64,000 bases of DNA from Penicillus capitatus (GCA_965649825.1 OZ287696.1:2263724-2327723), one strand, 5' to 3'. Positions 22,748 to 51,373 are shown, counted from the stretch's first letter. The notes: a model not told the origin generated them from the letters alone. Translations and numbers: made by a program.

Positions 22748-24077
22748 TTATTTCTCTTCTCTCGTTCGATGGCGAAGCCCAGCTCTTGCTAAAGACACAT
22801 CAGACAGTGAGAAGATCCGTTTGCCGTGATAAAACGCTGTGCCATCACATTTTGCGGAAGCGGATGGTGATCCAGCCATCGGATGAGATCCTCTTCCAGA
22901 AACGGATTCTGCTCGAGGCGGTGTTTTGCTTGACGCCGCCCTCTTCGTTTCTTCCCCTGCCAGCCAACCAGCAGACTTGTACAAAATCAATGCAACGACC
23001 ACAGAAGCAAAAACAAGCATCATCCCACTCATCATCCACAGAAACGATATCGAATCCGAGGGACGCAGGAGATAGAGCCATTGATCCAGCAGACCTTCCA
23101 ACACACAGCGATACATCACAGGGAGGAGGGGTCTGTACGGAATACCTAGGTGTTTCGTCAAAGAGATGGCGGCGGCATAGATCTTTGGAAGATGTCCAGT
23201 GTATCTGGGAGTCAGCGTCATCTCAATGCTTTCCAGTGGCGCCGTCTCGTCTTCTCTGTAATGCTCAATGAGGACAATCTCAACCATCACGCGATTCTGG
23301 AAACGCATCAGCAGTCGTGCTGGAAACTTCCACAGCCTGATATCACAAACTGCCCTCATTGCTCAAGATCATGCATGACATTCCATTTTTATCACTTAGA
23401 CAAAAAATGCGAGTAATCGTGTACAGGTTGTCCGGTGACAGCGACGAAAGATTCGTGAAGTTTGGCTCCCCCTTCCGATCGTAGCACCGTTTGCGCATGA
23501 AAGACTTCAGGATCTTTATCTTCCTTTTCGAGCGTCAGTTGCAGAATGATGTCTACCTGTAGACACAGGAAATTGATTTGGTGTCGTGCAAAAGGAGAGG
23601 TACGTCATCTCCTGAATGGAAATAGCGCCGAGGACGATCTTCCTGTTGGATGCTTGGCAAAGATGTGATGTCTGACAGTCTGAGATGCATGGTCGCATGC
23701 TCTGTTCGAGTATCGAATGTGACGGGAGTTTTCACAGACGTCCATGACGGACTCCATCTCCTGTTTCAGCATTTGACGTCACGTCAGGGCGAGGATTGGA
23801 TATACCGAACACCCGTAACGGATGTCAGAATAAGAACACCCCAAGTGGCAGAAAAGAGACAAGGAATCAATGCAGTATAGGCACAGCAGACGGCACAGTT
23901 CTGCAAAAGACGACGGAACATTGGCTCGTTTTTAGTTGCGTGAATAAGCGGGATAAACCAGAGATCTTTTTGCTGATCAGGTTCATTCAAGTCGTGTACC
24001 GATAGCTTGACGTCGATGACGAAACGGTTTTTTGATGGAACGACGTCATGTCTTATCATTACGGCATAGACGACCAT
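22748..24077 (-). CDS. Hypothetical membrane protein, multi-exon; 5' structure uncertain
   Basis: ORFs 23784-24110, 23553-23735 and 22748-23359 join through short GT-AG introns; hydrophobic segments near both ends. No family recognised. Confidence 0.55.
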
Positions 24078-24437
24078 TCGTGGCCAAGGAGTTTGGACTG
24101 AATGGCACATTTATCTCTCTTGTGCAAGGATTTCCCAAGCAGTCAGCCCTGCATCCGACGCCCAGTCGCGTTCGTTGGAACGTGGTGCATTTCTGCCGTA
24201 GGTGTCACATCAGATGCGTCGCAGTGATCCAGACAGCCCTGCGAAATCGAGGCGGAAGTCCGCCGCGGCGCCACAAATGTACCACCGTGGAGCGTGTTTC
24301 GCTGCAATGTCGGCGACGCAGGATCGAAGACCGGTATCGCTCATCCTTGGTCCATGACTGTCCCTCGTAGCCCTCGAGCAGAGACGTAGGTCGCCAGCAG
24401 GGTGCCGAGACAGAGGGTCGTCAGTCGGGGACCAACG

Positions 24438-24621
24438 TGTCACTCGTGTCAATGGACAGCTGTCCACTTTCGTGCAGCTGACCGCGGAGACGCGTCGATG
24501 TGACGCGTGTGTACGTTCTACGCGTATAAATCCGAACATTAAACGACACAACAGTCTTTGTAACCTGTAAACCTTCGTCGTTACTTTGTCGTTAACCGCG
24601 TGGTTCATCGACAGCGTGACA
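24438..24621. mobile_element. Possible solo-LTR/MITE-like piece inside the copy-A-specific insertion
   Basis: 184 bp bounded by TGTCAC...GTGACA with internal TATAAAT and ATTAAA; absent from copy B; no target-site duplication found. Confidence 0.3.
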
Positions 24622-26772
24622 ACTCGTCGCTTCCGTCGTTGACGCGCCGCCCACCTCACTACACGGACACGGCCTCGCTGGCGACGGGACCGCATTCGCA
24701 ATTTTTGAAGGCGTTTTACGCCACCCCCGAACTCGGCTGAAAGCACGCGGAAGTTTCGGAGTTGGGCCCTCCGATCTGTCTCATGTCGCGTAATCCCAGC
24801 GCTTGGGCCAGCGTCGCAAACGATGAGGCTGCACCGAGCGAGACGCGACCGCTGCCTGTCGGCCAAGTTGCTCTCACGGCGACTCCCCGACGTCTCCCTC
24901 GTCTTCCTGCCATTCGTCCGTGACGACTTTCTTGACGACTCTTTGCGAGTCTGACGGACCGAGGCATGCTGTTCTTTGACGTTTCTTGACAAGACGACGT
25001 TTTCTTGCCCATTCATTGCAGGTTTTGTGGCAAGTGCACGTGGTAGACTGGTGTTATTCAACCGTTTTCCCTTAATTGCCTCACTCACTCTCAGCGTGTC
25101 GTGGTACTGTGTAAATACTTAACTATCACACAGCACATGTCTCTGACGAACTTCGACACCCTTCATTCTTAGTTGACACAGTCTTTCTTCCTGATGGGAC
25201 GTGGTGCAGATTCTTTCCGACCGCATTTTTTGGCCGACTTCAGCTTACTCCGTTACCTTCTGGTTCGCGGGCAGTCCGTAGCGGAAAGCGGTTCTCTGAC
25301 GTCGAAGAAGGCGGCCGACGGTCAGAGTGAAGGCTTGCAGGAATGTTTGTGCGTGCGGGTGGAGATGGCTGACGACGAAACTGTATCGAGGCGAGAAAGG
25401 CAACATTTAACTAAAGTCGTCAAACGAAATCGGTTAAGAGAGATTCCCGCGGGGCTAGGAGAGGTCCTTACTCCTGGCGTCGGAGAAAAAATACAGCAAT
25501 CGTCTACGCACGGAGGCAGTCGGAAGTTATTCTCGTCCAGACCCGTCCTTATGTCGGTCTGGTTAGAAGAGTGTTTTCCGGCGGTTTTTACAAAATCGGC
25601 TGCCCGAACTTCTTGGATGTTTTTTTTTCCATTTCCCCTGACGGGGCGTGGCACATGTTCATTCAAACGCCATGTAAATGAGGAATTATATATATTCTCA
25701 GTTGACACAGACGTGGTCGTCGCTTGTAAGATCTTTCATCTTTGAATTCCTAAATCCTTTACCCACAAGTATCCCTGCTTCTATATTCATGGATCCCTAT
25801 CTGTCCACTGGTCGGTGTGAAACTTGGAGGCCGCTATAGTACTTAGAACATCGCTCTGTTTGTATCGACAAACCCCGTCTTTTTTATAACTCTTTCATTT
25901 CAAGAACATAGTCTCTCGCGCCGGCCGATGCAAAAGTGAGTTATGTCTCGAAACTTAAAGTCAGTCTGTAACACAACATACTTCTCTTCCCATTTTGAAG
26001 GTTCGGAGACGAAAATCGAATCTCTATTCCGATTTATATCTAGACCATCATCATTTTGGCCCATGTGGCACATTTAGATACTCCTCGCCTGTGATACTCA
26101 GCGACCTTTCCGATGCTCTTGTTCGACCTCCGACAGTTTCGCTCTTCTATGAAGCAATGGCAGTTGAACCGCTGCTGCTTGCGAGGCTGCAATCCAAGAT
26201 TGCTTCCCCGATGGCATCTGACGTGCAACGAATCCTTCGTTGAGCACCGATCGCATTCTGCTTGCTCGTTTCGTACAATGGACAAGGTACATACTGCAAA
26301 GCATTTCAGGCTGCCGTTGGACAACACGAAGGGTCCAAATGGCAGTCCAAGGCTCCAGCATGTTCTCATAGTTGTCCGACGAAACGATCAATCCTTGAGT
26401 CGACGGTAAGTATCAGACGGATTCAATTTAAACATATCCGCGGCACCAATTTTAGAACCATCCGTTTTCTTTATTCATCTCGATATACAGAGAGCATTTA
26501 GCATGCGTCGACGACACCAGATATTTGTTCAGGTACTGATGATGAATACGGGTGTGTCCAGCTAATAAACTGCCACTCCGCTTCACTCGGAGCCTCTACG
26601 CGGAAACTACATACAGATAAACAGACACGTCTCATTTAACCAATGCATGGACATTTAAATCGTGCATCCGCCGGGCGAACGCACGTAACGCATTTTCTCC
26701 TCCGTTTATTCGCTGCCTGTCTGTGCTTCTGACGTGTCGTAGTTCTCGACCATCCACATTTTTCTCCACACA

Positions 26773-27109
26773 ATGCCTCGTTGCGAAACACGTTGCAGAT
26801 GCGCCATCGGTCTTTGCGGTCTGGACTGCCCATGCCAATTACATTGTCTGTGCAAAACTGGTTCTCCTACGGAAATCTACAACGGCCCGTGCGGCTGTGG
26901 CCACTGCGACAAATCGTGCGCTGCTTGTAACAGAACGTCCGAGGAATTTCGTCGCAAAACCATGCTTGGACGTGTCAGAGGAGGAATTGTCCTTGCCTCA
27001 ATATTCGCAGGCACCACCTTCGTGGTCATCCGCAGAAGAATGAACCGCGCACAAGTAACCACGACGAGCATTTTTTCAAACACAAATTCTTATTCCATAG
27101 GCTGCCTGA
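26773..27109 (+). CDS. Cys-rich (metallothionein/CXC-like) tail-anchored mini-protein, 96 aa, copy A
   Basis: 13 Cys in CxC clusters, one C-terminal hydrophobic helix flanked by Arg/Lys; 46-nt GT-AG intron 27055-27100 then GCT GCC TGA, mirrored in copy B. Confidence 0.75.
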
Positions 27110-27833
27110 GTCGCTCGTCGAAAGAAATTTTCCGCAGCCGTAGATATCGCAGAGTACAAAGGAATCGATGGTGTGGTTTACTACGACCTCGATGTTTTTG
27201 TCGGTCGGCGTGGAGGGCTGAGCGAAAGCACTGCCGGCCATCGCATCTTCCGTACACGCATTTTCACCTAGGCCTTGTATGATAGAAGAGAGTTAGAAGT
27301 TTAGGCCGCTGCGGGCGCTACAGTTGTTGCTACATTATGAAATGAATTGCGTACAAACAACGTTTACCAACACCACGGCCTCGCTCGCTTAGGGAGAAAA
27401 GTTGCGGCCGGCTCGCGTCTTACCTCAACGTGGCACGAGAGGACACCGAGGCAGAGGCAGTCGCTGATGCACTCTGAGCACAGTCGAATATTCCAGATGC
27501 GCAGGCACGTCGGCTGATACAGGGAAAAAAGAACATGTGGCATGCAGACAGGGTGAATGCGTTGTTGGGCTTGGTAGAGTGGTTCTTCCTCGCTCGCCCG
27601 AAGATTTTTGTCTCGTGGCTACAGCGCGACGCGAACGACTCGTGAACTGCTGCTGCATGAGAAATGCGCCGAGTGGACCGTCGATGTCCGCGGAAGCTGC
27701 TGAGAACCCAACATCGCATGACCCATCAGGTTGCGACGTGGAGATGCCGATTAAGTCACCTCTTTCCCGAGGTGGGCAAAATCCACCGCGCGCTGGGCGA
27801 GAAGCATAGTAGGGAATACTTACCCAGATTCTG

Positions 27834-28576
27834 ATGGCCTGTCATCACGTCGAGTAGAATCTAAAAGTGTCGCCGCCGGATGGCTCGGCACCCTACATGC
27901 CCCTCAGCGAGATTCGGTCGAATGACAGACAGCAGGAAGCATACTGCCGGGTCCTGTCTCAGTAGAACGAGCTCTACGCAGAATGTCGCCGCATGAGAAC
28001 GCAGGTCACACAGGCTCTTGTCCTACACGAGCAGTGCTCCGTGGAGTGGGACGACCCCTCTGTGTCCTCGAAACAGGAGCTGTTTCGCCGCAGGGAGAAA
28101 GCTGCCAAGGAGCGCACCGGCAAGGCAGGTTCAGGAGGGAAGCACAGACTCCAGGATCCGCCTCCGAAGGAGGTGGAGTTTGTGAATCCGGACTTGGAGG
28201 AGTACCTCCTGGCATCGCTCGAGTCGATGCACAAGAGACTCATCCCAGACTGCAGAGTCTGATCTCCGCTGCGATGCACGTCCACGTTAAGAGCTTGTCG
28301 GATCCAGACTCCCGGCAGCGCCACGCCGTGAAGCGCCTTGCCATCGACCAGAGAAACGACATCACGAGACTGGGCATCGCTCCCAAGCGACTGGCGCGAG
28401 ACGGCAGTGGAGCGAAGAGGTACAGAGCCGTCGAAGCGACGACCGGGGTCTCGTCCTCCACGAAGGATGCTGGATGCCGTTCGTCGAGCGTCCCTTCGAA
28501 GATGAGGAGGCGTCAGGATGGGAGACGACTGCCGACCACGTCCTGCGTCGTCTGCCGAAAACGACTTTCGATCTGA
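27834..28576 (+). pseudogene. Orphan ORF disrupted by in-frame TAG stops (copy A)
   Basis: Homologous to 62723-63488; each copy has stops where the other has sense codons; possible 35-nt intron near 28256-28290. Confidence 0.5.
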
Positions 28577-28675
28577 GCGAAGCAGAGGCGAAGCAGACGA
28601 TGCTCTCGGACAGATGACGACGGCCAAAATGACTTACTCACTCGATTGTTCTACGACGTCGACGGCGCCATTCTC

Positions 28676-29633
28676 ATGAAACGTGTGGCCCTTCGGCTTT
28701 CATCCGACGTGCGACGCCTGACCTCTGCGCGATCCCGAGACCTCGCCAAGCGGCGTCGACGGCCGCTCTCGTGTCCCCCGGTCTTCCCGAAGGACGGATC
28801 CCCCGAAGAGACGACTCTGCTCTCGGTGCGGCTCCGTGCCCGAGCTGGAGTTCGCCAGAGGGACTGCGGCGCGTGACGACTACGACGCCATCTGCGTTCT
28901 CGGAGGCGGCCACTCGGCCGACGGAACGCATCCGCCCTGGGTCTCGCGGCGACTCGAACTCGCCCGACGTCTCCTCGAGCGCCAGGCCGGTCCCGCCGTC
29001 CTCCTGTGCGTCGGTAAGCGATTCCCTTCGGACGTCTCCTTCGGAGGTATTTGTGCAGGGGGAGGAACACCGCACAGGCCGCCGCTGTGCGACGAGCACG
29101 GCTACGCGGTCCATGAGGCGACGCTGCTCGCGGCGGACCTGATCTCGCAGGGCGTCGATGCCCGACGACTCCTAAAGGAGTATGCCTCCTACGACACCAT
29201 CGGCAACGCCTACTTCACAATGACGTCCCACGCCATCCCTGCGAAGTGGTCTCGCGTGGCCGTCGTCACCAGCGAGTCCCACATGCCGAGGTCGAGAGCT
29301 CTCTACACCGACATCTTCAGCCTGGGGAGCGCTCACCTGCCAGATTCGTACCGTCCTGCGATCACCCGATCTCCTGCCGATCTCCTGCAACCTAGGTTCC
29401 TGCTGGAGTTCTTCGCGGCCTCGGACGAAGGCGCCCTGTCTCCTGAGGTGCTGGAAGCGCGGCGCGCGCGGGAGGCGGCGAGTCTCGCCGAGTGGAAGCA
29501 GAACTTCGCGAAGATCGAATGCCTGGCAGACTTCCACCTCTGGCTCTACGCCACCCACAGGTGCTACGCCGTGGCTCGGCAGCACGAGTTCGCATTCTCT
29601 GACATCGGCGACCTCGATCGACTGACCTATTAA
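28676..29633 (+). CDS. DUF218 (YdcF/ElyC-like) domain protein; 5' end unresolved
   Basis: DAICVLGGG, GGGTPHRPP, EYASYDTIGNAYF, VVTSESHMPRS motifs; 45-nt GT-AG intron after LLCVG. Confidence 0.82.
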
Positions 29634-29643
29634 ACAAGTTGTG

Positions 29644-31012
29644 TTAAAGGCGAAACTCTTTCGACTGGACAGGTTCGTTTCCCGATCCCCGTCGCCACGT
29701 TCCCGGCATTTGGTCCTCGTCCGTCGCGTCCATCCTCCACTGCTCGTTGAACAGGACGGTCGACAGATACCGTTCGCCGAAGCTCGGAAGAACGACGACG
29801 ATCAGCTTGTCCCGGTTCTCCGAGCGCAGCCCGACGCGCAGGGCGGCCTCGACGGCGGCGCCGGACGAGATGCCTGCCAGGATCCCCTCCTCCGTCGCCA
29901 GTCTCCGCGCCATGGCGATCGCTTCCTTGCTCGACACCTTGATCACCTCGTCGATCAGGTCCCTCCTGAGGACCTTCGGAACGAATCCCGCGCCGATGCC
30001 CTGGATCTGGTGGTAGCCTGGCCGGCCGCCGGACAGGACGGCGCTCTCGGTCGGTTCGACGGCGATGAGCTGTATCCCCGGGTTCTGTTCGCGCAGGAAC
30101 TGTCCGGCTCCGGTGATCGTCCCTCCGGTCCCGACGCCCGCCACCAGAATGTCGATGGCACCGTTCGTGTCGTGCCAGATCTCCGGCCCCGTCGTCTCGT
30201 AGTGCGCCTGAGGATTAGCCGGGTTCTCGAACTGCTGCAGCATGTAGGCTGAGGGCAGCTGCCTTCGGATCTCCTCTGCCTTCTGGATGGCCCCTCTCAT
30301 TCCCTAAGGCACCACACCCTGTCCGACCCGCCGAGCGCGGCCGGTTCACCTGCGATCCGTCCGTCAAGACAAGTCTGGCGCCGAACCCCTTCAGCAGAAC
30401 GCGCCGTTCCGTGCTCATCGTGTCCGGCATCGTCAGGACCAGATCGTACCCCAGAGTGGAGGCAACGAAGGCCAAACCCACTCCGGTGTTGCCGCTCGTC
30501 GGTTCCACCTACTCCACAGATTCTCCACCCAAAAAACGGCTGCGAGGTGGCTCGCACGAGTGTCGTGACTCCCGGCTTGATCCATCCTCTCCTCTCCGCG
30601 TCACGGACCATGCTCAGCGCGATCCGATCCTTCACACTGGCCACCGCAGCCACGACATCACTTTGCAGAATCGCGTTAGGGCTCGTGCCTCTTGCAGGGT
30701 TCCATGGTCTCGAGCTTGGCGGCGATCTGCGCGAAGCTGGTCCTTACCACGCGGTTCAAGAACACCTAGCAATCGTCGGCTGCCGGTCCGTGCGAACGGA
30801 AGTCATACCGTCGGCGTGTCCCCTATGGTGGCGCACACGTCGGCGGAAAGCTTTGCGCTGCCGTTGCGTTTGATGTCGGCCGCGAGCCCACCGTCTGCTT
30901 CGCTCTGGCCTCCGATCTCCATCCTCGGCCGCAGACGCGCGCGTCGAGTACTGTGTCCAGCTTTGTGACTCGAAACTTTCGGTGAACCTTTCCACGGAAG
31001 GACAGTCCGCAT
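29644..31012 (-). CDS. cysK: Cysteine synthase / O-acetylserine(thiol)lyase, transit-peptide-like N-terminus, 4 introns
   Basis: IGDTPTV|[13 protein letters not shown]|SVKDRIA (PLP lysine), [47 protein letters not shown]. Confidence 0.95.
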
Positions 31013-31095
31013 GATGCAAAAAAACGACAACCCGTACAGGAGAACGAACGCACGCGTTTTGGCAAAGATGATGACGACTTCCATCACTGAGGCGT

Positions 31096-32750
31096 CTAAT
31101 TCACCTCTTTGATCAGCGTCAGAGTCTTGCCCTGGTCCCAAAACGGAAAGTCCTTCTTCTCCTGTTGCAGCTTGAACGTCTTTACCTCACTAATCGTGGC
31201 TCCTTCACGGGCTAACTCCATCTGCCTAGCCGCATTCTCCCTATAGCGCTGGCTATAGGGATGGCACTCGACGGAGAGGGCCCCCTTGCGCTCGTCGGAG
31301 TTGAGGTTTCTCACCAGATTCGACAGCTTCTTCCAAGCACGCTCCGTCCTGATCTTTGCGATAGGGTAGTACACCAGGCGATAATAACGACCCACGTCGA
31401 CGTTCTTAATGGAGAGTGGCTTGAACATTCGACAGTATCTGGAAGAGACTCGGCAGGAGTATGAAGATGGGCAAAGACTGACCTGTTCACCCGAATATGC
31501 AGTTTGCGCTCCCTGACAGTCCACCTCAGCCAGTCTCCGTCCTCTTCAATGTCTCCGCCCCCGAAGATTGCCTTCATGTGTTCCAGGAGAGATCTGTCGT
31601 CTGACAGCAGCCAGAACTTAAGCTGGATGCGGAAGTACGGGAAGGTGCCGGACTCGACTAATCGTCCAGCGAAGAGTCCATAGCTGCTGTCGATCCAACC
31701 CATGAGCCACTTGTTATTGAGTTGGGGCCTCCACTGGCACGTCTCCTTGAAAACAAATCCCTCGTCCTGCCAGACGCCCAGGTCCTTGTAGCGCTGCACC
31801 CATTCCCTGAAGGTGTCCCTGGACCGTTGGAGGAAGAGATTGCCATTGAGCAGATGGATGATACACGGTAGGTGCTTGTCGTCTTTCACGTAGAAGATCT
31901 CTTTGGTGTCGTCGGCGTGGCCGAAGTGTAGAAGGGAGCGGATCTTTCTGAAGAACTGTTTGTCTGAATGGTGCAGCGCGAAGTAGGGACGCCCGTTAGG
32001 GCCGACCTTGAATGGGAGCTGTGCCTCCGTGATGCCAATGAACCACTCAGCGAAGTGCGTATCCAGATGGTCTTTGTTGTCGGGTTGGACTTGGTGAAAG
32101 GCCTCAAGGCTGGGACGGGACAACGGCAGACTTAGCGGATCGTTGCTCCGATCTGGACGAGGTGGTCTAGGCGACCCGTGTCTCAGTTCCAAGTCCTCCA
32201 GGGACCCTACACTCTCTTTCTCGCTCTCTTCGAGCTTCACTAGCTGAGAGTCCGTGATTTCCATCTTCTCGGTTTCTTTGTCGACTCCGTCAGCTTTCCT
32301 GAGCTGGTGTACAATCGAGCGGACCATCCGATCGGACGATGGATCGCAGTGGGAGAACGGCAGAACTTTGAAATTCGCGAGCCGTTTTGTTCTCTCCGGT
32401 GTCTCCCTGTGCATCCTTCGCAGCCGCTTGGCATCTCTTTTCGTTGCCTTGTGCTTACGGACGAGGTCGACCGCGAGGACGCTCTCTTCCGGCGAGTGCG
32501 TTCTCCGATAGACTCGCTGCCGGATTTCTTCTTCATCTGCCTCGACGTCCTTTGCCTGATTCTTCACCTCCAACTTCTTCGCGTAGCCGTAAAAACGCTC
32601 GTCTGCGTCTTTGGGTCCATCGTCTGCTTGACGCGCGCGACCTCGCGCGAAGGAACGTGAAGTCGTTGCCGTCTTCGTTGCTAGTCGATCCCGCAGACCG
32701 CTGCCGACATTCCATCCCGTGAAGTCGAGGAGACGGCAACTCCTGTGCAT
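31096..32750 (-). CDS. Nuclear-encoded double-motif LAGLIDADG protein with N-terminal extension and one spliceosomal intron
   Basis: Motif 1 FAEWFIGITEAQLPF...IRSLLHFG...IHLLNGNLFL; motif 2 KWLMGWIDSSYGLF; a 44-nt GT-AG intron near 31439-31482 joins ORF 31311-32750 to 31096-31438. Confidence 0.8.
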
Positions 32751-32949
32751 CAGTTCGGACTCTCCTTCAATGCGGCGTCACGTCGAGAGACTCGTGCACT
32801 CAACTATCCGACGCTGTAACATCAACGGGTCATCGCAGTCACGCGCGGATGCCGTTTTCGAATGCAGAGTCACTTCTCCCTGCGTTTGTGTTGATGTTCC
32901 GAAAAAACATGTCTGAGCTTCTTTAAAAGCGAATCTGCGCAAAATCCTC

Positions 32950-34872
32950 GACTAGTAATAGGTTAAAAACGTCTTCTTATCGAGAAACATCAAACAACAA
33001 TTTGTCTCGGTCGTCGGATTCGCGAAGAGTCGTCAAGAACACGTCACAGTCGCACATCGCTTGCTTCCAAACTTCCCAAAGGAGCAAAATCTTCAGTTCG
33101 TCGGGATCTGCTTCTACCGCCCTCCTGACATCAATTAGTGTTCGCCCCTCCGTTAAGAAGTATCCATTCAGCTCTCTGAAGTCCTGCACAACCCGGATCT
33201 TTTTCTTCCTAAGATTCAGGAATGGCATCAAAGGACTCAGAAACATCCGCATACCTGGAGAAACCCTTTCGATGTACCCGAGTTCTCCATAGCGGCGGAG
33301 TTGTTTTCTGAGATCTTTACTCTTTTACTCTTTTCCATGTGTCTATTTGTAGGTACACTCTTGTTAACCACCCATCAGGGGATACTGTGTTCTTGGCGGC
33401 TCGTTAGTTTTGACTATACATGTCTCCATCAAATGTAAAAACTTGTGCACGGTTAGGTCGAATCCCCTGGAAAAAGTTCAAGTGAATATTGCTTCAGCGC
33501 TGCTTCACTTCCACCAACAACTATCTTTTTTCACCTTGCAGAACCTCGCCGCAACATTTGATTGCCTCGTTTGGCATCTTCTTGACAATTACATTCTTCA
33601 ATCCAAAGATTCTGATGAGAATCTGATTAAGGGGGGTTGTCTTACTGGCATTATAAACTTAGGACTTCAACTCCCCATTCTATACCATAAGTGAGGTCGA
33701 CAACAAATTCTTCATGCGAGGTGTTAAGACTATTGTGCATCCACCTTTCAGATCGATCTTTCACGGAATTGAGTGTTTTCCATTCTTAAGGTTTTCGAGA
33801 AAGCTTCTTACTAAAAAGTAAGCCTACAGTGTTTCCTGATTTTTTAATAAAAACGAACGATCATTGGGACCCTCCATTTCTGAGATATGATGATTTCCCT
33901 CTTGTTAACTCGCCGGTGAATTTGGGTGTTGCTAGCTAACTCAGTTTCTCGAAGACATTTCAAAACCTCTCCCTCGTTTTTTCCATGTCCTTCCCAATGT
34001 CCCAAGACTGTGTTCATTTATCTGAGTGTCCCATTACCCAGAATTGTCTCAGTAGTCTGACTTACAACATGGAACGGGGCTAGACATTTTGTCCCGTGCT
34101 TCAATCTCAAAAAGTCAACGTCTTCGTTGTCTGCGTCCTGATTAAATCTTCTGAGCGTCGCCTTGTTGATCATGTCGATTCCTCGTTCGAATCCCTCTTT
34201 ATTGAATGTGGCATGAGTTCTCACACTACAAACTTATCACATTCCTACGCTCCTCTATCAAACAAGCGTTTAGGTTTTCCCAACTTCCCAATTGAAAGTT
34301 TCGCGGAGGTCTGATTGACGGGGAACATAGCCATCATTGGGTGTCTCGTCACTTTAAAATCTGCCTCTGTGACTGGATCTTTTTCTCTCATGTTTTCTGG
34401 ATTTTAAGGTTCAAGGCTATTCGCTGTCGCAAAGACTTATAGGATTGTGTCCTCGTACAAGAGAGCTTTGTGAAAATCTGCTGTCTTTTCGCTCGAACAC
34501 AGGGTTCTGTTCCAACCGACGACCGTTTCCAAGCCTGGTTCTGCATCCCGCGGGGAGATGTCCCTTCTGTCTGCATCGATTGGACTCAACGTGCGGCAAC
34601 ATTCGCAATCTTTTAGCGAGGCGATTTCCCGTTGCAACGTGAGGACCGAGACAGACAAACTCAGAAAGTTCGTTACAATGGCAGATGTTCTAATGTTTTC
34701 ATGTTCTTGTCGCGTTGTCGGTTGACGACGAAGGCTTATAGCTTACAGAAGACTGTCAGACAAGTAAAGGTCGAGGTTAAATACCCGAGGAACTAACTAA
34801 CAGGTCACATCAAGTGTTCCTGGGCCACTCGTTGGTCCACTGCTCTGAGCTGGGCATTACGTAACTGTGACA
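32950..34872 (-). mobile_element. Degenerate retrotransposon remnant (Ty3/gypsy- or DIRS-type reverse transcriptase N-terminus)
   Basis: KDLRKQLRRYGELGYIERVSP...SPLMPF...KKKIRVVQDFRELNGYF at ~33318-33155; possible protease motif LFDRGA near 34265; AT-rich with many stops; no YxDD motif seen; 34754-34872 bounded by TGTCA...TGACA. Confidence 0.7.
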
Positions 34873-36340
34873 GTTCTTAAGGACCACAGGCGCTTCATCT
34901 ATCACAATAACACAACACCGGTCAGGCTTGAGCTATGCGCGAACTTTTAAGTTGTGTTGACTGCAGAGAGTCACGGTTTTTGTAAGTAGAGGAAATGTGC
35001 AGATAGGTGTTCAGTCGGTGCAAATAGTGTGGACCGAGAAGACTATTATCGATCTGGAAATCACACAAATGGTCGACAGACGGCCACTTCCCGAAGAGAA
35101 TGTGCAGGGAACCAACCTAACCTGTATCGTCACTCAATCGTGTGTGCGTAAAACAAACCAATCGTCAAACGCGCGTAAAGCATGAGTTTATGTGAAACAT
35201 AAAGAATACCATTACATACCATCCGTTCGGTTCGATTTATGCGCATCGGACTCATCTTGACCGAATAACAAGCCAGAAAAAATTAATCCGACTGAAAACG
35301 GCCAGTTCGATTTATGCGGATCGAACACATCTTGACATTGACAGAATAACAGCTCAGAGAAGCCTGGAATCTTGGATGATGAGGTGCACACAAAATCCAT
35401 TCCTTGCCCGAATACCTACCGAACGATAGCTTTAACCAATTCATGCCCGTCACGAACCCATGCAACCAGTCGCCTCATGAACACAACTTCTCTTCCGTTG
35501 CCGCTGGCAAACAAAACAATCGAAACCTTGTCTCGAATGGGCGCTTTTCAGTCTCGTCGGCATCCCAAACCAAACGGCACAAACCTGTTCTTTGGCGATC
35601 TAACCGTCCGACCACACTTCCGTTCCCGCATCTCCCAGACCAATTCCCAGCGCCTCGGCACTCGACCTACCGCCGCATGCAAACCCCGTGGAGCGTAATA
35701 CCATACACACCGTCTAGACTACCACTCTCCCGTGTGCAAACTAACGTCCTCCTCAAGCTGACTACGAAGCAAAGCTTCGTGGCGAAGCCGACGCAAGAAA
35801 TCCACGGACAATAGCTCTTTAGGAAAAAATCTACGCGAAACAGCCGAAGTATGCTTGCAATGGAAACGAAAAAAAACAAGGAAAAAACAACAAGCCTACG
35901 ATACCGAGAACGGAAAGACAGCGCTGGCGCGGGAAAGAAGAAACCACGTTGCCTACGCAGACACTCAAGAAAAGAAAAAAATCGCGTCGAGCAATGGCGA
36001 TCGCAGAACCCTAGGTCAGCACGGCGCAGTCAACGAAGGAACGTGGCCCCAGAGCCATCCTCGTTCCTTTGCCAAGATCATCCCACGCTCTCCGCTCCGC
36101 GCATTCATTTAGTCGTCGTGCTTTGGCCTCACCGCGTATTCGCCATTCGTGTTCGCTCTCTCGTCACACATCACCAAGTAACGCATTAGAGCGCCAATCT
36201 CGTATCCTGTTGTGCCGACCCTTGACATTGGCTTCTCTCCTCACCCGCCCATCTTGACAAAGTTGCGCCTTCCGCACGAACAGGCCCGATACAACCTCCG
36301 ACAAAACCTAATCCGCACGCCAGACCGCTTCAGCGGTCAT

Positions 36341-37354
36341 TTATCTTCTGGATCTCTTCCGAGAGCTTCTAGGTGAACTCCCCGCTCCAATGTCGACTTT
36401 CCGTTTTGGATCTTCCGTTCCTCTTAACCTCGCCAGCCGTTCTTCCTGAGACCCCGTGTTGCGAAGATTATCAGAACGCCTCGCATCTCTTTCTCTTGAC
36501 ACTTCTTCTTCGTACGTCAAGGCCCGCGTACGACGTTTAGAACCGTTGCCATCGGACGCCATATCTTGTGTTTCCATAACGACGTCTCCATCTTCGTCGA
36601 CAGCAAAAACTTCCGCGGGCGGCTCGGCGTCGTCCGCTTCTTCCGCGGGCGGCTCGGCGTCGTCCGCTTCTTCCGCGGGCGGCTCGGCGTCGTCCGCTTC
36701 TTCCGCGGGCGGCTCGGCGTCGTCCGCTTCTTCCGCGGGCGGCTCGGCGTCGTCCGCTTCTTCCGCGGGCGGCTCGGCGTCGTCCGCTTCTTCCGCGGGC
36801 GGCTCGGCGTCGTCCGCTTCTTCCGCGGGCGGCTCGGCGTCGTCCGCTTCTTCCGCGGGCGGCTCGGCGTCGTCCGCTTCTTCCGCGGGCGGTTGCGCCT
36901 CGGCGGCCTCGTTTAGGATGAAGTTGACGAAGGCAATGGCGAGTGCGCGTCGTCGTCGACGGACCACTCCCACACGGGCGTTAAGCTCTAACCTCATGTT
37001 TCTTACGAACATCGCAATTCTGAAAACCGTAAAATCGTCGTTGTGGGCGTTCATGTTGGTCACCAAAGCATTCCTCAACCTTGTCGCAAAGTCAGCCCAC
37101 GTGTACGGCAACGCGTCTTCACCTCCACCAAAACCCCCGGTCACATGACGCGGACACATCTCTGCACTAACGGATATGAGTGCGAATATGTTATCCGGCC
37201 CGTTTCCGTTATAGTACGATTTTAATAGACGACAAGAGTAGGCTACATGGGCGTCGAAGAAAATACCGTATCTTTCCTCATCGACGGCTTCTTGGCGCAA
37301 CCCGCTCATGGTGTGGTCTGTCAATATCTGAGCAACGAAGGCAAACGAACTCAT
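36341..37354 (-). CDS. Intronless orphan protein, left-arm paralog, with 9x PPAEEADDAE and basic C-terminus
   Basis: 337-aa open frame, alignable over its full length with 38189-38857 (ILTDHT, FATxLRNAL, FRIAMF, LTYEEExSRER). Confidence 0.75.
   Translation of the reverse strand: MSSFAFVAQILTDHTMSGLRQEAVDEERYGIFFDAHVAYSCRLLKSYYNGNGPDNIFALISVSAEMCPRHVTGGFGGGEDALPYTWADFATRLRNALVTNMNAHNDDFTVFRIAMFVRNMRLELNARVGVVRRRRRALAIAFVNFILNEAAEAQPPAEEADDAEPPAEEADDAEPPAEEADDAEPPAEEADDAEPPAEEADDAEPPAEEADDAEPPAEEADDAEPPAEEADDAEPPAEEADDAEPPAEVFAVDEDGDVVMETQDMASDGNGSKRRTRALTYEEEVSRERDARRSDNLRNTGSQEERLARLRGTEDPKRKVDIGAGSSPRSSRKRSRR
36611..36892. repeat. Perfect 30-bp tandem repeat, 9 full copies plus a partial
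   Basis: Unit TTCCGCGGGCGGCTCGGCGTCGTCCGCTTC at 36611, 36641 ... 36851 with no mismatches. Confidence 0.98.
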
Positions 37355-37432
37355 CGTGGTCGTGTTTCCTAGAAAGTTTGAAAACTTGACGCCAAAAGCT
37401 ATCGTGCAAGGGAAGTTTAATGAGAAGTGGCG

Positions 37433-38094
37433 AAAACCCTAATACGCGACAAAACCCTAACGCACGACGTCTTTTATACTCGCAAAATGGACTAATAGAA
37501 GATTTAATGGAAATCTGCGGTTAACTTAAAAAACTCTTATGGCGATTGGCTGATTCGACGACACTGTGATGGGACGTCTGCCTATTAATGTCAGCACATG
37601 CGGCAAAATCGACTGAGCCAGAAGCTTAGGTAGCTAACGCCTCAACCAAGAGGTCAGCTGGTGTTGTGTTTAGCCGTAACGCCCATGATAATGCGCTCAT
37701 CTACCTACACTTGTGTCGATCTCCAGGTGACAGGTCGTAGGTTCTCTATACCTTCCCATCCACAAATAGACCCGCGGCTCTACGTCACAGATTCCAAGCA
37801 GATTCCGGAATCTTCGAAGAATATTCCTCTTTGTTACTTAAAATAAAGTACCCTATAAAAGCGTTGTAGCTGTACAGATCTTGTCTTTCGTTTGCAAGAC
37901 TTTACGTTTTAAAAGGTCTACGTGCGCCCACCGTTCAAATTGTTTCATCTAAAACCCTACGCGACAACGGCCGACATCTAACCGTAGGACAGGAACGTCC
38001 AATCGCACTGTCGTCGAATCAGCCAATCCCACGAGAGTACAAAACCTAATTTTAGACATCAATAGTATATTAGGCACTTACGCAATAGGGTTTT
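37433..38094. promoter_or_regulatory. Divergent promoter region with mirrored CCAAT-containing motif and telo-box-like AAAACCCTA motifs
   Basis: GATTGGCTGATTCGACGACA-x-TG-x-GAT-x-GGACGT at 37544-37577 and its inverted copy at 37995-38028; AAAACCCTA at 37433, 37451, 37951 and inverted near 38086. Confidence 0.5.
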
Positions 38095-38188
38095 GTTACG
38101 TGTTTGGGTTTTGTGAATCCTCCGTAGAGTTCTCCTTAGGCAATACCTGTTGGCGTCGAGTTTCCATATCTTTCGAAACATTATCACG

Positions 38189-38857
38189 ATGAGTTTGTTT
38201 GCTTTGGTAATTCGGATTTTGACAGACCACACCCTGACAACGTTGGGCCAAGAAGTCATTGAACGGGAAAAGTACTGTGTTTTCTTCTACGACTTTGCAG
38301 TCTATTCTTCTGATATTTTGCGGACGCACGACAACCTAAACGTGCCAAGTAATATGAGCGCGCCCCTGTTCGTAAGTACAGAGATGCATCCGAGTAATGT
38401 GGCTTGGGGTTACGGAAGATGTGGAGAAGCGTTGACTCGTACGTGGGATCACTTTGCAACAGTCTTAAGGAATGCTTTGGCGACTATCATACACGCACAC
38501 ATTGACGAATTTGCAAATTTCAGAATTGCGATGTTCGCAAGATACATGTGGTCAGAGCTCAGCGCTCCTATCGAAGTGGTCCGCCGACGAGAGCGTATTA
38601 TCTCAACTGCCTTGGCAAACTTCATTATAAACGAAGCAATCGAGGCGCAGCCAACCGAGCCGGAGGAAGTGCATGTCCCTAAACGTCGTACGTGGTCCTT
38701 GACGTACGAAGAAGAATTGTCAAGAGAAAGAGAGGCGCGGCGTCACCATAATCTTCGGAACACGCGGGCTCGGGAAGAACGGCTGGCGAGGTTAAAAAAA
38801 GTGGGAGATTCAAAACAAAAGGTTAATAGTGGGGCAGGGAGTCAACCTAAGAGGTAA
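38189..38857 (+). CDS. Intronless orphan protein, right-arm paralog (~222 aa)
   Basis: Open frame starting MSLFALV, aligned with MSSFAFV of 36341-37354; lacks the acidic repeat. Confidence 0.72.
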   Translation: MSLFALVIRILTDHTLTTLGQEVIEREKYCVFFYDFAVYSSDILRTHDNLNVPSNMSAPLFVSTEMHPSNVAWGYGRCGEALTRTWDHFATVLRNALATIIHAHIDEFANFRIAMFARYMWSELSAPIEVVRRRERIISTALANFIINEAIEAQPTEPEEVHVPKRRTWSLTYEEELSREREARRHHNLRNTRAREERLARLKKVGDSKQKVNSGAGSQPKR

Positions 38858-39924
38858 CGTCGAAGTTGTCTGGTGCGTGGATTAGGATTTGCTGAAGGTT
38901 GGATCGGGCGCATTTGAGTGGAAGGCGAAGCTTTATTGCGACGGGCCGAAGCACGACGACCAAGGAATGCGAGCAGTGAAGAGCATGGGGTGATGATGGC
39001 AAAAAAGAACGATGATCAATGTGGGGCCACGTTCATTGCTTAAAGGCGGCGTGCTGACATAGAGTTCTACTATCTCCGTGGATCGACGCGAGTTTTTTGT
39101 GCGTCTTCGTAGGCAAAGTTTTTTTTTTTGTGTTTCCGTCGTTAAGCGCTCGTTTTTTTTTGCGGGTGTCATAAGCTCGTTGATTTTTCTCTCGTTTTTT
39201 GTTGCCTATGCAAACACACTTCGGGTGTTTTGCATGATTCTCTTTCTTCTAAAGAGCCGTAGTCCGTGGATGTTTTGTGTCGGTTGCGCCACGAAGCATT
39301 GCTTAGTAGTCAGCTTGAAGGAGACGTTGTGTTCTTGAGTCGAATGGCTGCTTGGGTTCGCGACGGGCATGCGTTGGATACGGGTATCATCAGGGATCCA
39401 TTCAAGGGCTTTGCATGTTCTCTATCCAAAAATTCACTGCTCGATGCCGTGGCTATTTCTCTGTCAAGACGAGTTCGTTCCGTATAAATCGAACTGGCTG
39501 GTTTTATTCGGATTTGTTGTTTTGGCCTGTTCTCTGTCAAGACGAGTTCGATCCGTATAAATCGAACCAAACCTGCGTATGTAATGGCATTTTCTATATT
39601 TCGCATAAGTTGTTATTCCACGCGCGTTGAAACGATTGGTTCTCTTTTGGGCAACACTCCTTAGATCATCTCCGATTCTGGTACGTGTATCATGTATAGC
39701 TTAGTTGACCACCCCGTGCGCCGCCCATGCAGTAAAAGAAGTCCGCTGTGTCAATAACAGAGTTTTACGTCCATCTCAGGAAACCGACCGTATGCGCTAT
39801 TCTGCCGGACACGACAGTATCTTTAAAGATGCAGTATCACAACTGCAGCCTCGTCTTGTCAAAAGAGGACATACATATCTCATGCTTGGCGAAGAATCGG
39901 CTGATGGCAGACTTGCGAATGCCA

Positions 39925-41983
39925 CTACAGTTCATCTTTCACCGCAGAAACATGGAGATGCGTTTCACTATTGTTTTTCGAGCGAAAGAGGTAAGGGAAG
40001 GGTCTCAGAGGAATGAATCTCCCTGTTTCTGGTTTGACATTTAGCTTTTCATTCTCCCACACGATGCGGCCTCGGCTAATAGTCACCACAACCTATGTAG
40101 GTAATGAAGGGTGGTTATGAGTCGATCCTTTGCATGACACTAGCAAACCTCGCCCCTTATCTTCTTCCCTTCGTAGATGTTGGTGTCCATAGTGGACTGT
40201 TGATGGGCAGCTCGAATAACGTGTTCTTTTCGTGGGTCGAATAAAATCACATCGGCATCCGATCCCTCTTCGATCACTCCCTTTCGCGGATAGAGATTGA
40301 AAATCTTTGCCGCTTGAGTGCTGGTCACACGAACAAACTCCATGGGATGCATCATCCCTGCAGCATGACACCCTTGTCCTTGAGTTGCCTGAGGGCAATG
40401 ACGACCTGAATTGACCATCTCTTCCCATACGACGTGCATGCGCTCCTCGATGCCATTCACTCCATTGGGAATGTCGCGGAAATCGTGGCGCCCCACTGCT
40501 TTCTGGGTCGTGTTGAAGACGGCATGGTCTGTTCCAACGAGATCAAGAACACTTCCTACTAAGGCCTTCCTTAATGCCTCTTTGTCAGCATCTTCCCTAG
40601 AAACAGAAAATCGACACGGCGCCCGTATATTGCGGAAGAACAGGCTACCGTATAGGAGGACTCATCACGTACTGTGCAGCAGTCTTGAAATCTGGATCAC
40701 GGATTTTGTGTCCATTCATCGAGAGCCCAACGCAAAGAGCTTCCCCGATGAGGGGCTGACCTTTGAGTTTGGCACGGTGAATCTGCGAAGACACGAGCAG
40801 TACATAGGAATGGCATTTTTCGAAAGACTGTTACCTCAATCATGGCGTCTTCGCACGTCACATGGACAACGTAGAGGGGGACATCAATGTATGACGCTAG
40901 ACGGATGGCTCTGTGCGTTGCTTCTGCTTCCAAGACTGCAGGACGCGAGAGAGCATGGCCAACAGGAGCTGTGATTCCTGCCTTGTATATACGATCCTGT
41001 CCTAGAGCGACAGCATCTCCATTCTCTGCGTGCACCTGAAACCATTCGCCCTTGTTAATGAATCAAAATGCCAATGCAGTGCATGACCATCGGCAAAGCG
41101 CCCAGTTCTTTGCAGCGATCGAATCCGAACAGCAACTCTTCATCTGTCACCATCAATGACCCCTGCAAAGCGATGAAGGCAAGAAAGGAAACGGGGATTC
41201 TGGCAGCGACTTTGTAGGCCATGAAGAATTTGAATGAATTGATGCCGGCGTTGACTAATGTCTCCATATCTTGCGAAACCTGTCGCTTATGCTGTCCCCA
41301 TTTGTGCCTTTTCTTAGAGGGATAGATAACCTTGTCATTCCATTTTGTAACAGCCATGTGGAATCCATAGTCCATACAGCTTTTCTTCGATTTCTCCTGC
41401 AGAACGACCATCACGATTGCTGGATGGGTCAGGAATGGAGATACCGTACTTTATAGTTTTGGAATCCCTGTAGCAGATCGCCATCGTTTGGCATAGCGAA
41501 GTCGATGTGCATCGTCGTCCCTCCTGCCAATGCCGCAGCCTAAGAGCCAATAGAGATGCATGTCTTCTTTTGTTTCTCCTCTCTTTTGACTTGGCCAAAA
41601 AAGAAATCGTCACAGGCAATCTGACCCATAAAGAACATTTCCAGATGCGTATGTGGATCAATGCCTCCGGGCATGACAAACAAACCCTCTGCATCAAGAA
41701 CCCGAACGTCCTCTTCCACAACCTGTACGACACTTCGACGATAAACGATGGTTTCCCTTCCATCCTATCGACGGCCGACCTCTAACGACGGGGCCACTTT
41801 CGTAATCAACCCCTCTTCGATAAACACATCCGCACGAAACTGGCGATCCGCATTGACGACGATTCCATTCTAACAGATCACTGTGCAGTGTCGCACATGG
41901 AATGACGATTCTACTTTGATAAGAATCGCCCCGTGTGCAACAGAGAAGAGGAGTAAGATGAAGCTGCACACCGACAGACACAT
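39925..41983 (-). CDS. PYD2: Dihydropyrimidinase, 11 introns, signal peptide and C-terminal KDEL
   Basis: PGGIDPHTHL, AAALAGGTTMHIDF, GINSFKFFMAYK, VHAENG, GTDHAVF, IPNGVNGIEERM, IFNLYPRKG...GSDAD; ends VKDEL-TAG. Confidence 0.95.
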
Positions 41984-42034
41984 CGTTAAGGACTGAATGA
42001 TGATCATCTGACCAAATCTGATCAGAAAGGAAAG

Positions 42035-43043
42035 ATGCAGCACTCCTCCGTCGCTTGTCGCAAGACGCCGAGCGATGTGCCGATCAGCGGCATTACACCA
42101 CTCGTTCGTTTCAGAACCTCCTCTCACCTCTGTGCAGCGCACAAGGTCACGCGCATCATGAAATCGACCTCCTGTCGAACTGTCCCGAACAGAGTACGGG
42201 CGAGAGTGGCCTACAGCGACCGAGTCAAGTTCTCGCCGGAACGGCAGCGGCGCTCTCCTTGACACTGGGCACTTTTTCGGGGACAGCACTGGCTGGAGAA
42301 TTTGACATTCTCACCGAAGCGACACCCACGGAGAAGTTTGTCCTGGACGACGCTTCCGTTTTGAGCAGAAACACGCGAGGCACTCTCAATTCTAAACTGC
42401 AATCCCTCGAAGTTCGTCGATCTCTGTTCGCTTCTCTCAAACTTAAGGGACGTGTAGGAAACCACAGGCTACCGACTGGAGGTGGCGACAGTGCGACGAC
42501 TGGAGTTTGAGCCAGATCCTTTTGCATTTGGAGACAAAGTGTGACATCGAATGCCTTGTGTGTGAAAGCGTCATCTTCAAGAATGTAGGTCATTGAGAAA
42601 TGGTATCCCAAGGTGGAAGATGGAACGAACAAAGGCATCTTGTTAGTTGTGACTGCCAGCAAAGACGGAGCATTGACTGGGGGTCCGAACTTTATGAAGG
42701 CAGTCGGAGATCCTCTCATCGACAGTATCATCTCGAACGATATCCCCATTCTCACGGAGCAAGAAAAATTCAACGAAGCGGTGCTAGAATGTGTCAACCG
42801 TGTGGATGCCGTTCTCAGAGGGCAAGCGGATCCAGGTCATCTCACAACGGAGGGATCGCGAATGGGTCATGTGTGAGCATAGGCGGGCCTGTTCGCGAAG
42901 AGAAGGCACGAAAACGAACGTATAAGACGAAGAAGGAGACGGCGAAGTCGAAGAATATCACTTCGACGCTGGTGGTCACTCTGCTTTTCATTTCTGTCGT
43001 TGTTCCAATGTTGCAGTACTATGGTTACACATCAAAAGAATGA
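42035..43043 (+). CDS. TLP18.3: Thylakoid lumen TPM-domain protein TLP18.3/Psb32, 4 introns
   Basis: Bipartite transit peptide ending ALA-GEFDIL, LDDASVLS, KWYPKVEDGTNKGILLVVT..DGALTGG, C-terminal helix VVPMLQYYGY. Confidence 0.9.
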
Positions 43044-43132
43044 GAAGATCTTTCCTTTTTGTCGACATCCGTATTTTGCCTTTACGAAATTTTGATTTGA
43101 CAGATGTCGTTCTTTTCACGACCCACTCTCTT

Positions 43133-43484
43133 CTACTGTCCTCGGCGATAGCATCGTCTCCTGCGCCGTCCAAGATTCAGAGAGCGACCAAAAGAAGTGA
43201 GATGACAGACAATGTACGTTGGTTCTTCGATGAATCTTGACCAAAGATAGCAACAGCAAGGAATGCAAAACACAGGACTCACAATCGCCAACGCCAACAG
43301 CATCTTCCTTCGTGCCTATCAGAGAAATTAAGCGTGGCATCGCGACGTTCCTCCTTTTTCATATGTGGCAGACTTTATCATCGCGGTGTTCGTCATGGAT
43401 GTCGTCGATCTCTTGCGCAGAGATGACGTGCCACGCACATGCGCTGATCCACGTCCAGATCAACAGAGGAATCTCTCTGCTCAT
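43133..43484 (-). CDS. Small type-I membrane protein (signal peptide, acidic ectodomain, Cys-rich TM end, basic tail), 1 intron
   Basis: Spliced MSREIPLLIWTWISACAWHVISAQEIDDIHDEHRDDK|ARRKMLLALAIVSPVFCIPCCCYLWSR...RRRRRCYRRGQ; no family recognised. Confidence 0.45.
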
Positions 43485-43575
43485 GGTCGAGGCGATCCCG
43501 ATCGCGTGTGCGACGTTTCGTTCGCGATAGACGTCATGTCGCCAAGATGAGACGCATTTACCAAGGGGCGTTTGA

Positions 43576-44052: not shown

Positions 44053-44117
44053 GGCACCATCGACAGAGGGATGTTCGTACGTTCGCGGTCATCTCTTCTG
44101 TCTGAAGGTCCATAATA

Positions 44118-45797: not shown

Positions 45798-45815
45798 AAA
45801 AAAGCTATTCAACAT

Positions 45816-49103: not shown

Positions 49104-49278
49104 AATGCGTCAAACATGGATCATGGATGAAAATGGCAACAATTTTGAATGCATTACATGAACATTTTCCCAAAGGAGCAAGCCTGTCATTGTCCTTTGC
49201 TTAGCAGAAGTAGATTGTCTTGACTGCAACGCGAGTGACTCCATTTCTGGATGCTTTCCACTTGAGAGATGACAGCAC

Positions 49279-51281: not shown

Positions 51282-51373
51282 TTTTGAGACGTGAATGCAC
51301 GATCGCACGTCACTGTCAAGAGCGACCGACATACCGACGCGAGTAAAAGACAGGGAACGCATCTTCTTCGACG

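Follow-up and report, generated by a model that had tools for sequence, protein, structure and literature searches.

Is a gene block that occurs twice within a 64,000-nucleotide stretch of the green alga Penicillus capitatus (GCA_965649825.1, OZ287696.1:2263724-2327723; hereafter the window) a mobile element, or was it duplicated by other means? The block begins at about 24.1 kb and includes a DUF218 gene, a cysK gene of the PALP family and a LAGLIDADG-like gene. A first-pass annotation of the window described a 15.5-kb island of orphan modules, GC-rich genes and transposable-element (TE) debris, and proposed a large cargo-mobilising element, with segmental duplication as the alternative. We conclude, with a probability of about 0.8, that 24157-33039 is one copy of an old two-copy segmental duplication (~9-10 kb) of ordinary nuclear genes, followed by an unrelated spacer and shaped by old duplication, gene conversion and inversions. 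We infer that the block does not transpose and has been moved and copied by recombination and repair only.

Window coordinates are used throughout; W denotes this species, A and B its two copies of the block, and X1 and X2 those of a related species (first and second, respectively). The second source for W was the 488-kb contig ctg340362 (ENA ERZ25074695), which is 99.83% identical to window 33574-53969 (35 differences in 20.4 kb). The related species was represented by contigs ctg303763 (X, 929 kb) and ctg303707 (Y, 646 kb) of ENA ERZ26696514, and all three contigs come from metagenome assemblies. Loci compared were L001 and L003 on X, L004 and L002 on Y and L006 on ctg340362, where a coordinate equals the window coordinate minus 52906. 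Conserved parts of the related species are ~82-88% identical to the window at the DNA level. As X and Y are 97-100% identical in the block and share their arrangement, we regard them as two haplotypes or strains of one species.

A two-copy repeat unit and its syntenic position

As the first-pass annotation had seen, the start of the block recurs near 58 kb and runs into DUF218. A direct-repeat search and self-BLAST matched 24157-24284, 24689-26533 and 27386-29088 to 58129-58256, 58294-60139 and 62281-64000, with order and orientation preserved and 89-92% identity (BLAST E = 0), a similarity far beyond chance. The repeat is longer than the ~5 kb first assigned to it, and extends through cysK and a second LAGLIDADG-like gene. 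Of ten candidate open reading frames (ORFs) of copy B, one, at 62907-63488, is on record; it lies on ctg340362, which gave the sequence past 64000; there, copy B continues with the remainder of DUF218, a 218-amino-acid (aa) PALP ORF and a 444-aa LAGLIDADG-like ORF, and cysK and LAGLIDADG thus follow DUF218 in copy B also. L006 9375-13158 is 94% identical to window 27386-31156, and L006 13298-15141 is 75% identical to window 31132-32943. Copy A (24157-33039) measures ~8.9 kb and copy B, which starts at 58129 and runs beyond the window end, ~10.6 kb; the two have the same (direct) orientation and are 34.9 kb apart. In an index of 153 billion genes, just two places encode exactly this 218-aa cysK product, both on one strand of ctg340362.

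Copy A carries 370 extra bp (24285-24688) between matching parts, and the unit centres (26534-27385 in A, 60140-62280 in B) are too diverged to align as DNA, each holding a small Cys-rich protein gene. The left ends are sharp and common to both copies (24157 and 58129). The right ends are ragged: homology fades through the LAGLIDADG gene (75% identity), and in B an additional 600 bp precede e', the short element that closes the unit (L006 15741-15871 in copy B). Element e' is an inverted match, 79-83% identical, of element e, which sits 740 bp inside the left boundary; e and e' are the only inverted pair in the unit and are minisatellite-derived. Gene g, the left neighbour of copy A, recurs in part and inverted directly to the right of copy B, where it abuts e' (L006 15854-16137 and 17801-17881, equivalent to window ~68760-70790), with 72-85% amino-acid identity to window 22748-23359. 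Pfam matches in L006 15100-20582, the right flank of copy B, were limited to weak fragments of RsmB/F and a BSD2-type zinc finger.

The genes of copy A keep their neighbours in the related species. On L001 and L004 a PX/Vps5 gene is followed by PRMT, gene g, module, DUF218, cysK and the LAGLIDADG-like gene, at 84-88% identity to W; window 18310-24077 matches at 88% and 28395-32860 at 86%, and the module between g and DUF218 aligns at 70-76%. This common gene order indicates that the GC-rich genes are syntenic, not inserted. Likewise, the position of copy A corresponds to no empty site in the related species, where the homologous genes are present. One stretch of L001 (6074-7626) matches 59937-61508 and is kept in W by copy B only. 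Homology with the related species stops at 24077 and resumes at 39759. The supposed 15.5-kb block does lie between conserved genes that end and begin at these positions, but it consists of two units, the repeat (24157-33039) and an unrelated spacer (33040-39759). The spacer is present in ctg340362 and absent from the related species, where the gap between the LAGLIDADG and amidohydrolase genes is ~2.3-2.7 kb.

The related species has a second block, inverted and next to the amidohydrolase-TPM-HIT genes, on both X (L003) and Y (L002); these loci carry HIT, TPM, amidohydrolase, LAGLIDADG-2, cysK and a truncated DUF218. Segment S, the single-copy DNA that starts with the same genes in W, is collinear with L002, L003 and L007 at 82-85% identity in reverse orientation, and is inverted relative to PRMT. 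L007 and L008 join LAGLIDADG-1, a minisatellite region (R) and SPC12. The order in W is PRMT, g, (module, DUF218, cysK, LAGLIDADG, e), spacer, S, (module, DUF218, cysK, LAGLIDADG, e), g fragment, and in the related species PRMT, g, (module, DUF218, cysK, LAGLIDADG), R, S inverted, rep, inverted block. R, from LAGLIDADG-1 to SPC12, consists of arrays of a 44-bp minisatellite that can be read as ORFs (L001 14367-20738, L007 1794-9463, L008 1-9300). Its length is 7.7 kb in Y; the version in X is longer, ~41 kb, and includes ORF2 of a long interspersed nuclear element (endonuclease and reverse transcriptase). The repeat rep is a 0.8-kb inverted array of the 44-bp unit between the second LAGLIDADG gene and the amidohydrolase gene. 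W has a single degenerate minisatellite unit (e') after both LAGLIDADG genes, with an inverted copy (e) in each left module. All junction differences between W and the related species lie at block ends and S ends.

The near-identical core and the diverging LAGLIDADG-like gene

A six-sequence alignment of the block was scanned in 250-column windows. Across 28.35-30.4 kb, which holds DUF218 and cysK, A-B identity is 0.98-1.00 (except 0.89 in the single window starting at 28454) and X1-X2 identity is 0.96-1.00, compared with 0.77-0.92 for every between-species pair. In agreement, synonymous divergence (dS) of the cysK exon is 0.006 for A-B and 0.025 for X1-X2 versus 0.26-0.31 between species. Only six A/B differences occur in 29104-30448, and DUF218 is 98-100% identical between A and B, with no indel inside ORF 28836-29633. 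Along the whole unit, A/B divergence ranges from 0% (29.6-30.4 kb) to ~30% (parts of LAGLIDADG). Paralogs that are closer within species than orthologs are between species, in mosaic tracts, are the hallmark of interlocus gene conversion, and this is the pattern found here.

The LAGLIDADG-like gene behaves differently from the core. Identity over its region is 0.79-0.89 for A-X1 (0.72 in the last window, past the 5′ end of the gene) and 0.58-0.87 for A-B, X1-X2, B-X1 and B-X2; overall, the LAGLIDADG genes share 64-87% identity. The ratio of non-synonymous to synonymous divergence (dN/dS) of the large exon is 0.12 for A-X1, which share 87% amino-acid identity, and 0.29-0.39 for the paralog pairs. 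The dN distances satisfy the four-point condition for ((A,X1),(B,X2)), and 26 informative amino-acid sites favour this grouping, compared with nine that group by species and four for the third split. The nine by-species sites are concentrated towards the C terminus, on the cysK side. The near-identity of the core within each species, the divergence of LAGLIDADG and the amino-acid sites that favour an older duplication together suggest that interlocus conversion between the two blocks keeps the core homogeneous. In our reading, conversion would be intense in the core, fade into the 3′ part of LAGLIDADG and be patchy in the left module.

The paralogs at 31311-32750 (A) and L006 13605-14939 (B) evolve asymmetrically. 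By branch arithmetic on the dN distances, the B and X2 genes have accumulated 5-7 times more non-synonymous change than A and X1; their ORFs are intact, with dN/dS ~0.4.

The genes had been called GC-rich at first pass, and GC does reach 0.63 at 28-31 kb versus ~0.51 for the window. GC at third codon positions (GC3) is 0.78 in DUF218 and 0.84 in cysK versus 0.49-0.67 in 13 other measured genes or ORFs of the window, and 0.74 and 0.80, respectively, in the related species. Homogenised and GC-rich tracts (the latter at 0.60-0.68, apart from one window of 0.57) coincide, and LAGLIDADG has 0.53-0.57. GC-biased repair during conversion may have raised the GC of the core, and is the explanation that fits best.

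Origin of the two copies

We propose that the duplication predates the species split, a reading favoured by the amino-acid sites (26:9:4) and dN but not by dS and third positions in this two-species comparison. The ancestor would have been palindromic, an inverted duplication flanking S: g(-), block (module, DUF218, cysK, LAGLIDADG, e), S, reversed block (e', LAGLIDADG', cysK', DUF218', module') and g'(+), with primes for the reverse orientation. In the lineage of the related species, S would then have flipped between inverted minisatellite arrays, and in the W lineage block B would have flipped, taking its e unit along. A single inversion in each lineage, broken at block ends and minisatellite ends, would yield the present arrangements. 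A palindromic ancestor also accounts for the inverted gene g fragment that abuts e' to the right of copy B.

Several points weigh against parts of this account. LAGLIDADG dS is 0.54 for A-B, 0.51 for X1-X2 and 0.60 for A-X1, which is ambiguous on age, and third positions are split between 24 sites by species and 20 by orthology; we read this ambiguous synonymous signal as partial conversion. The direct orientation in W versus the inverted one in the related species requires two inversions. Both A and B have the 2.1-kb left segment, which the related species lacks (24078-26248 had no counterpart in any related locus in blastn and tblastx); a copying after the split is the simpler explanation of that. 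A gene g fragment beyond the second block of the related species is a prediction of the model, and the copy number comes from the exact-product look-up and one assembly. For GC, codon bias of a highly expressed cysK could contribute to the high GC3, and the argument for biased conversion is that GC and GC3 peak on the homogenised tract.

Some of these points would be explained if each species had copied a single ancestral block independently after the split, with the second LAGLIDADG diverging fast under relaxed selection and no long-term conversion. Paralog dS slightly below ortholog dS, the species-specific left segment in both copies, the different junction and orientation of the second copy in the two species, and the excess of non-synonymous change in the second LAGLIDADG copies all agree with such recent events. 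However, a single copying without later conversion cannot give divergence from 0% to ~30% along one unit, and the 26 amino-acid sites unite B with X2. Moreover, B-X2 dN (0.228) is far below the sum of their private branches (~0.35, branch arithmetic), and two blocks at the ends of one S in both species would be a coincidence. We therefore consider independent recent duplications unlikely.

The cargo-carrying mobile element first proposed, whether Starship-, Helitron- or Pack-MULE-like and perhaps non-autonomous, would make A and B two insertions. The sharp common left end, the inverted e and e' near both ends of each copy, the LAGLIDADG-family gene inside the block and the differing block contexts of the two species are what such an element could offer. 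However, when ORFs of at least 40-45 aa were compared with Pfam in six frames (E <= 0.1), no transposase, tyrosine or serine recombinase, HUH/helicase or reverse transcriptase was found in either copy or the flanks, in agreement with the absence of such enzymes reported at first pass. The putative TE debris was not substantiated either: no Pfam family matched within 24100-28850, 32700-36400 or 37300-39760. Named window ORFs in the block matched only DUF218 and PALP, and precomputed Pfam annotations of called genes around both copies gave only PALP, SPC12, ion-channel, PRMT and similar families. The captain tyrosine recombinase of Starships (DUF3435) was absent from the scanned parts of the window and from L006 15100-20582. 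Of Helitron features, there is no Rep/helicase and no defined shared 3′ end, and the left end is GACGCC, not TC (a 3′ hairpin was not searched for). As for Pack-MULEs, the unit ends have no terminal inverted repeats and no target-site duplication is definable; the flanks at 24157 and 58129 have no repeat in common.

Other evidence also speaks against mobility. Only two copies are on record, their right ends are ragged, and the A genes are syntenic in the related species, which leaves no empty site. Element e lies well inside the boundary, and e' is a minisatellite unit with an array at the equivalent place in the related species. The LAGLIDADG protein has lost both catalytic residues, and next to P0210, a 46%-identical homolog from a more distant organism, the genes called over the first 8 kb downstream include neither cysK nor DUF218 (its contig covers only 1.2 kb upstream). 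Finally, inversions at block and S ends explain all differences between the species. Two copies only, ragged ends and syntenic genes are also what the first-pass annotation had named as refuting a mobile element. Such an element is thus very unlikely, and the findings favour the segmental duplication that had been offered as the alternative. Less likely still is that the block is non-autonomous cargo, mobilised in trans by an enzyme that is encoded elsewhere in the genome and perhaps recognises e/e', with excision and reinsertion instead of inversions behind the different positions and orientations in the two species.

Horizontal acquisition of the DUF218-cysK pair from a GC-rich donor would explain a GC of 0.63-0.68 against 0.51 for the window. 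However, DUF218 has one close match (84%) and otherwise green-algal proteins at 41-49% identity, its closest named homologs. The top PDB matches of cysK are chains named cysteine synthase, of which the second best is 4aec ('cysteine synthase, mitochondrial'); the search gave molecule names only, and 4aec, 1z7w and 1z7y are Arabidopsis enzymes. The best named homologs of proteins from the window are in green algae and land plants (41-77% identity), and the HIT protein has one 93% match followed by green algae and land plants. Both DUF218 and cysK contain introns or split reading frames, are syntenic with, and no more GC-rich than, their counterparts in the related species, and lie on the tract that is homogenised between paralogs. 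We give a foreign origin hardly any credence. The least probable explanation is an assembly artefact, in which the second copy would be a misplaced haplotig or chimeric join. The metagenome assemblies used as sources might raise this concern, but both copies occur in the same arrangement in the window and in the separately recorded ctg340362, the copies are 0-30% different with unique flanks, and the two related-species contigs agree with each other.

Other features, known systems and meaning

The features of the window that were delimited are collected in Table 1.

Table 1. Position, strand and supporting evidence of the features delimited in the window
Feature	Position	Strand	Evidence or remark
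Gene g, conserved left-flank gene	22748-24110	-	88% identical to related species up to 24077
Left module, copy A	24157-26533		89-92% identical to 58129-60139; looks non-coding
Element e, short repeat	24898-25023	+	Matches 58509-58630; 25-bp core matches 44-bp minisatellite units
Small Cys-rich protein gene	26773-27282	+	Ortholog L001 7832-8155; B paralog 61685-62035
Right module, orphan reading frame upstream of DUF218	27386-28650	+	Conserved
DUF218 (YdcF-like) gene	28680-29633	+	PF02698, E = 1.4e-15 (28836-29633)
cysK, plant-type O-acetylserine (thiol) lyase, PALP domain	29644-30900	-	PF00291, E = 4.9e-40 (29644-30300); split by intron(s)
LAGLIDADG-like gene, at least two exons	31096-32750	-	Ortholog of L001 12526-13857
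Element e'	32966-33039	-	Inverted copy of e; right end of copy A unit
AT-rich species-specific spacer	33040-35139		GC 0.45; no Pfam match; no related-species match
Inverted duplication, two head-to-head orphan paralogs	35140-39657		Arms 35140-37577 and 39657-37995, 71-82% identical
Orphan gene, 337 aa	36341-37354	-	Also called as 337-aa product on ctg340362
Orphan paralog, 235 aa	38150-38857	+	ORF; protein comparison
Segment S, single-copy, 17.8 kb	39759-57516		Amidohydrolase-family gene, TPM, HIT ... ion channel, SPC12
Copy B, window part	58129-64000	+	Continues on ctg340362: DUF218, cysK, 444-aa LAGLIDADG paralog, element e'

The two ORFs of gene g (22748-23359 and 23784-24110) are conserved in L001, and its 5′ exon ends ~47 bp from the left edge of copy A. 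The left module, which the first-pass annotation had listed among its orphan modules, had no Pfam match in six frames. Because its A/B substitutions are spread evenly over the codon positions of every long ORF and 27 alignment columns contain indels, the module looks non-coding. Its A/B identity is patchy, with 0 to 28 substitutions per 200-bp bin. The Cys-rich protein has an N-terminus rich in CxC and CGC that is conserved between A and the related species, and the B paralog is far more diverged; a hydrophobic C-terminal stretch, noted by eye, may be a membrane anchor. Searches of Pfam and of PDB sequences gave no match for this protein. The right module is 86-99% identical between A and B and 70-84% identical to the related species, and its long plus-strand ORF is conserved in L001 at 8827-9672. 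A 23-bp unit is repeated 2.3 times at 63418-63470 in copy B, and copy A (28559) has one unit fewer.

The second DUF218 of the related species lacks 555 bp, most of the domain (L002/L003 ~19950-19981 versus L001 9972-10525), and judging from this truncation is probably a pseudogene; the adjacent cysK is intact. In segment S, a 4.2-kb patch (48853-53030; 0.7%) holds 31 single-nucleotide polymorphisms out of the 35 differences that separate the window from ctg340362, compared with one such polymorphism and three single-base indels in the remaining 16 kb. The patch may be a local haplotype difference or an introgressed tract.

In the spacer, the 337-aa orphan contains a perfect tandem array of a 30-bp unit (9.4 copies, 36610-36892) that encodes PAEEADDAEP repeats. 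The 337-aa and 235-aa proteins are 51-67% identical, and neither matched a Pfam family; the 235-aa protein had no PDB sequence match, and its AlphaFold2 model (predicted local distance difference test score 52) was not usable. Telo-box-like AAACCCTAA motifs occur in both divergent orphan promoters (37433-37468 and ~38088-38115). As telomeric arrays, the AAACCCTAA motifs at 37.4 and 38.1 kb were rejected, being single promoter-like boxes, and a telomere-repeat search found no telomeric arrays. A 91-aa ORF at 32977-33252 ('VQDFRELN') that resembled a reverse-transcriptase fragment by eye was likewise rejected for lack of Pfam support. The tRNA and Rfam scans of the window gave no matches.

Of the three genes named in the first-pass annotation, DUF218 and the cysK-type PALP gene were borne out by Pfam, and the LAGLIDADG relationship emerged via the search against relatives only. 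The 479-aa ORF of the window had no Pfam match even at E <= 10, and the related-species copies scored E = 0.15 and 0.0012, short of the cut-off. However, phmmer against 1.84 billion representatives returned 269 relatives, 14 of them at E <= 1e-10. LAGLIDADG_1 was assigned to 19 of 25 aligned relatives, some of which are joined to exons of nad5 or cox1, as ORFs of organellar introns would be expected to be. A profile of the 25-member alignment matched I-PanMI at 1.5e-41, I-OnuI-derived enzymes at ~1e-33 and also I-AniI. The second exon (ORF 31096-31524) corresponds to the C-terminal end of P0211. The gene is spliced, nuclear and located between cysK and the minisatellite, not in an intron or intein. 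In place of the EGDG and DAEG of canonical relatives, its motif 1 reads EWFIGITEAQL and motif 2 WLMGWIDSSYG; the catalytic acidic residues are replaced by Q in motif 1 (canonical D) and S in motif 2 (canonical E), a loss common to A, B, X1, X2 and P0210-P0212. A long N-terminal extension is rich in Arg, Ser and Thr. By analogy, this is most likely a domesticated nucleic-acid-binding protein. LAGLIDADG proteins without nuclease activity act on RNA as intron maturases, and OTP51, a nuclear-encoded plant protein that has two LAGLIDADG motifs, is needed for splicing of ycf3 intron 2 (PMC9275481). Like these, the protein described here has a probable two-motif LAGLIDADG_1-type fold with replaced acidic residues and is nuclear-encoded. 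Unlike OTP51, it has no PPR repeats and exists as two asymmetrically evolving paralogs.

Concerted evolution by interlocus gene conversion, together with inversions, is best described in human segmental duplications (PMC3790853, PMC4467073), and conversion in duplicated genes has been reviewed (PMC3924837). The block resembles these systems in having two kilobase-scale copies tens of kilobases apart, mosaic identity, paralogs that are closer within species than orthologs and copies at rearrangement breakpoints. It differs in its compact algal-type genome, in copies that are direct in W and inverted in the sister species, and in block ends that carry a minisatellite, expanded to 8-41 kb in the related species. 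To our knowledge, such low-copy repeats have rarely been described in compact algal-type genomes. Conversion biased towards GC has been reported in other families. As in such tracts, GC and GC3 peak here on the homogenised tract in both species, but unlike in multigene families only two copies are involved. In the staggered-break model of Drosophila inversions, inversions are flanked by inverted duplications of breakpoint sequence. The inverted S of the related species is similarly flanked by inverted copies of the block at one breakpoint; however, the amino-acid sites suggest that the duplication predates the inversion of S, and recombination between inverted minisatellites would be a simpler route. 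With Starships, Helitrons and Pack-MULEs, the block shares a multi-gene segment in more than one copy, but not a captain, Rep/helicase, inverted repeats at its ends, target-site duplication or empty site, and it has two copies only.

Analysis of the two-copy block removes a candidate "Starship-like" element from the list and shows what, in a compact genome, can pass for such an element: housekeeping genes in an old low-copy repeat, with a near-identical GC-rich core, beside fast-changing spacers. The block also offers a small, clean case in which three processes are linked, namely two-copy concerted evolution in sister species, asymmetric divergence of a LAGLIDADG-like gene at the edge of a conversion tract and a repeat-bounded 18-kb inversion. 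Although not surprising in kind, the finding is relevant to the genome architecture of small algae.

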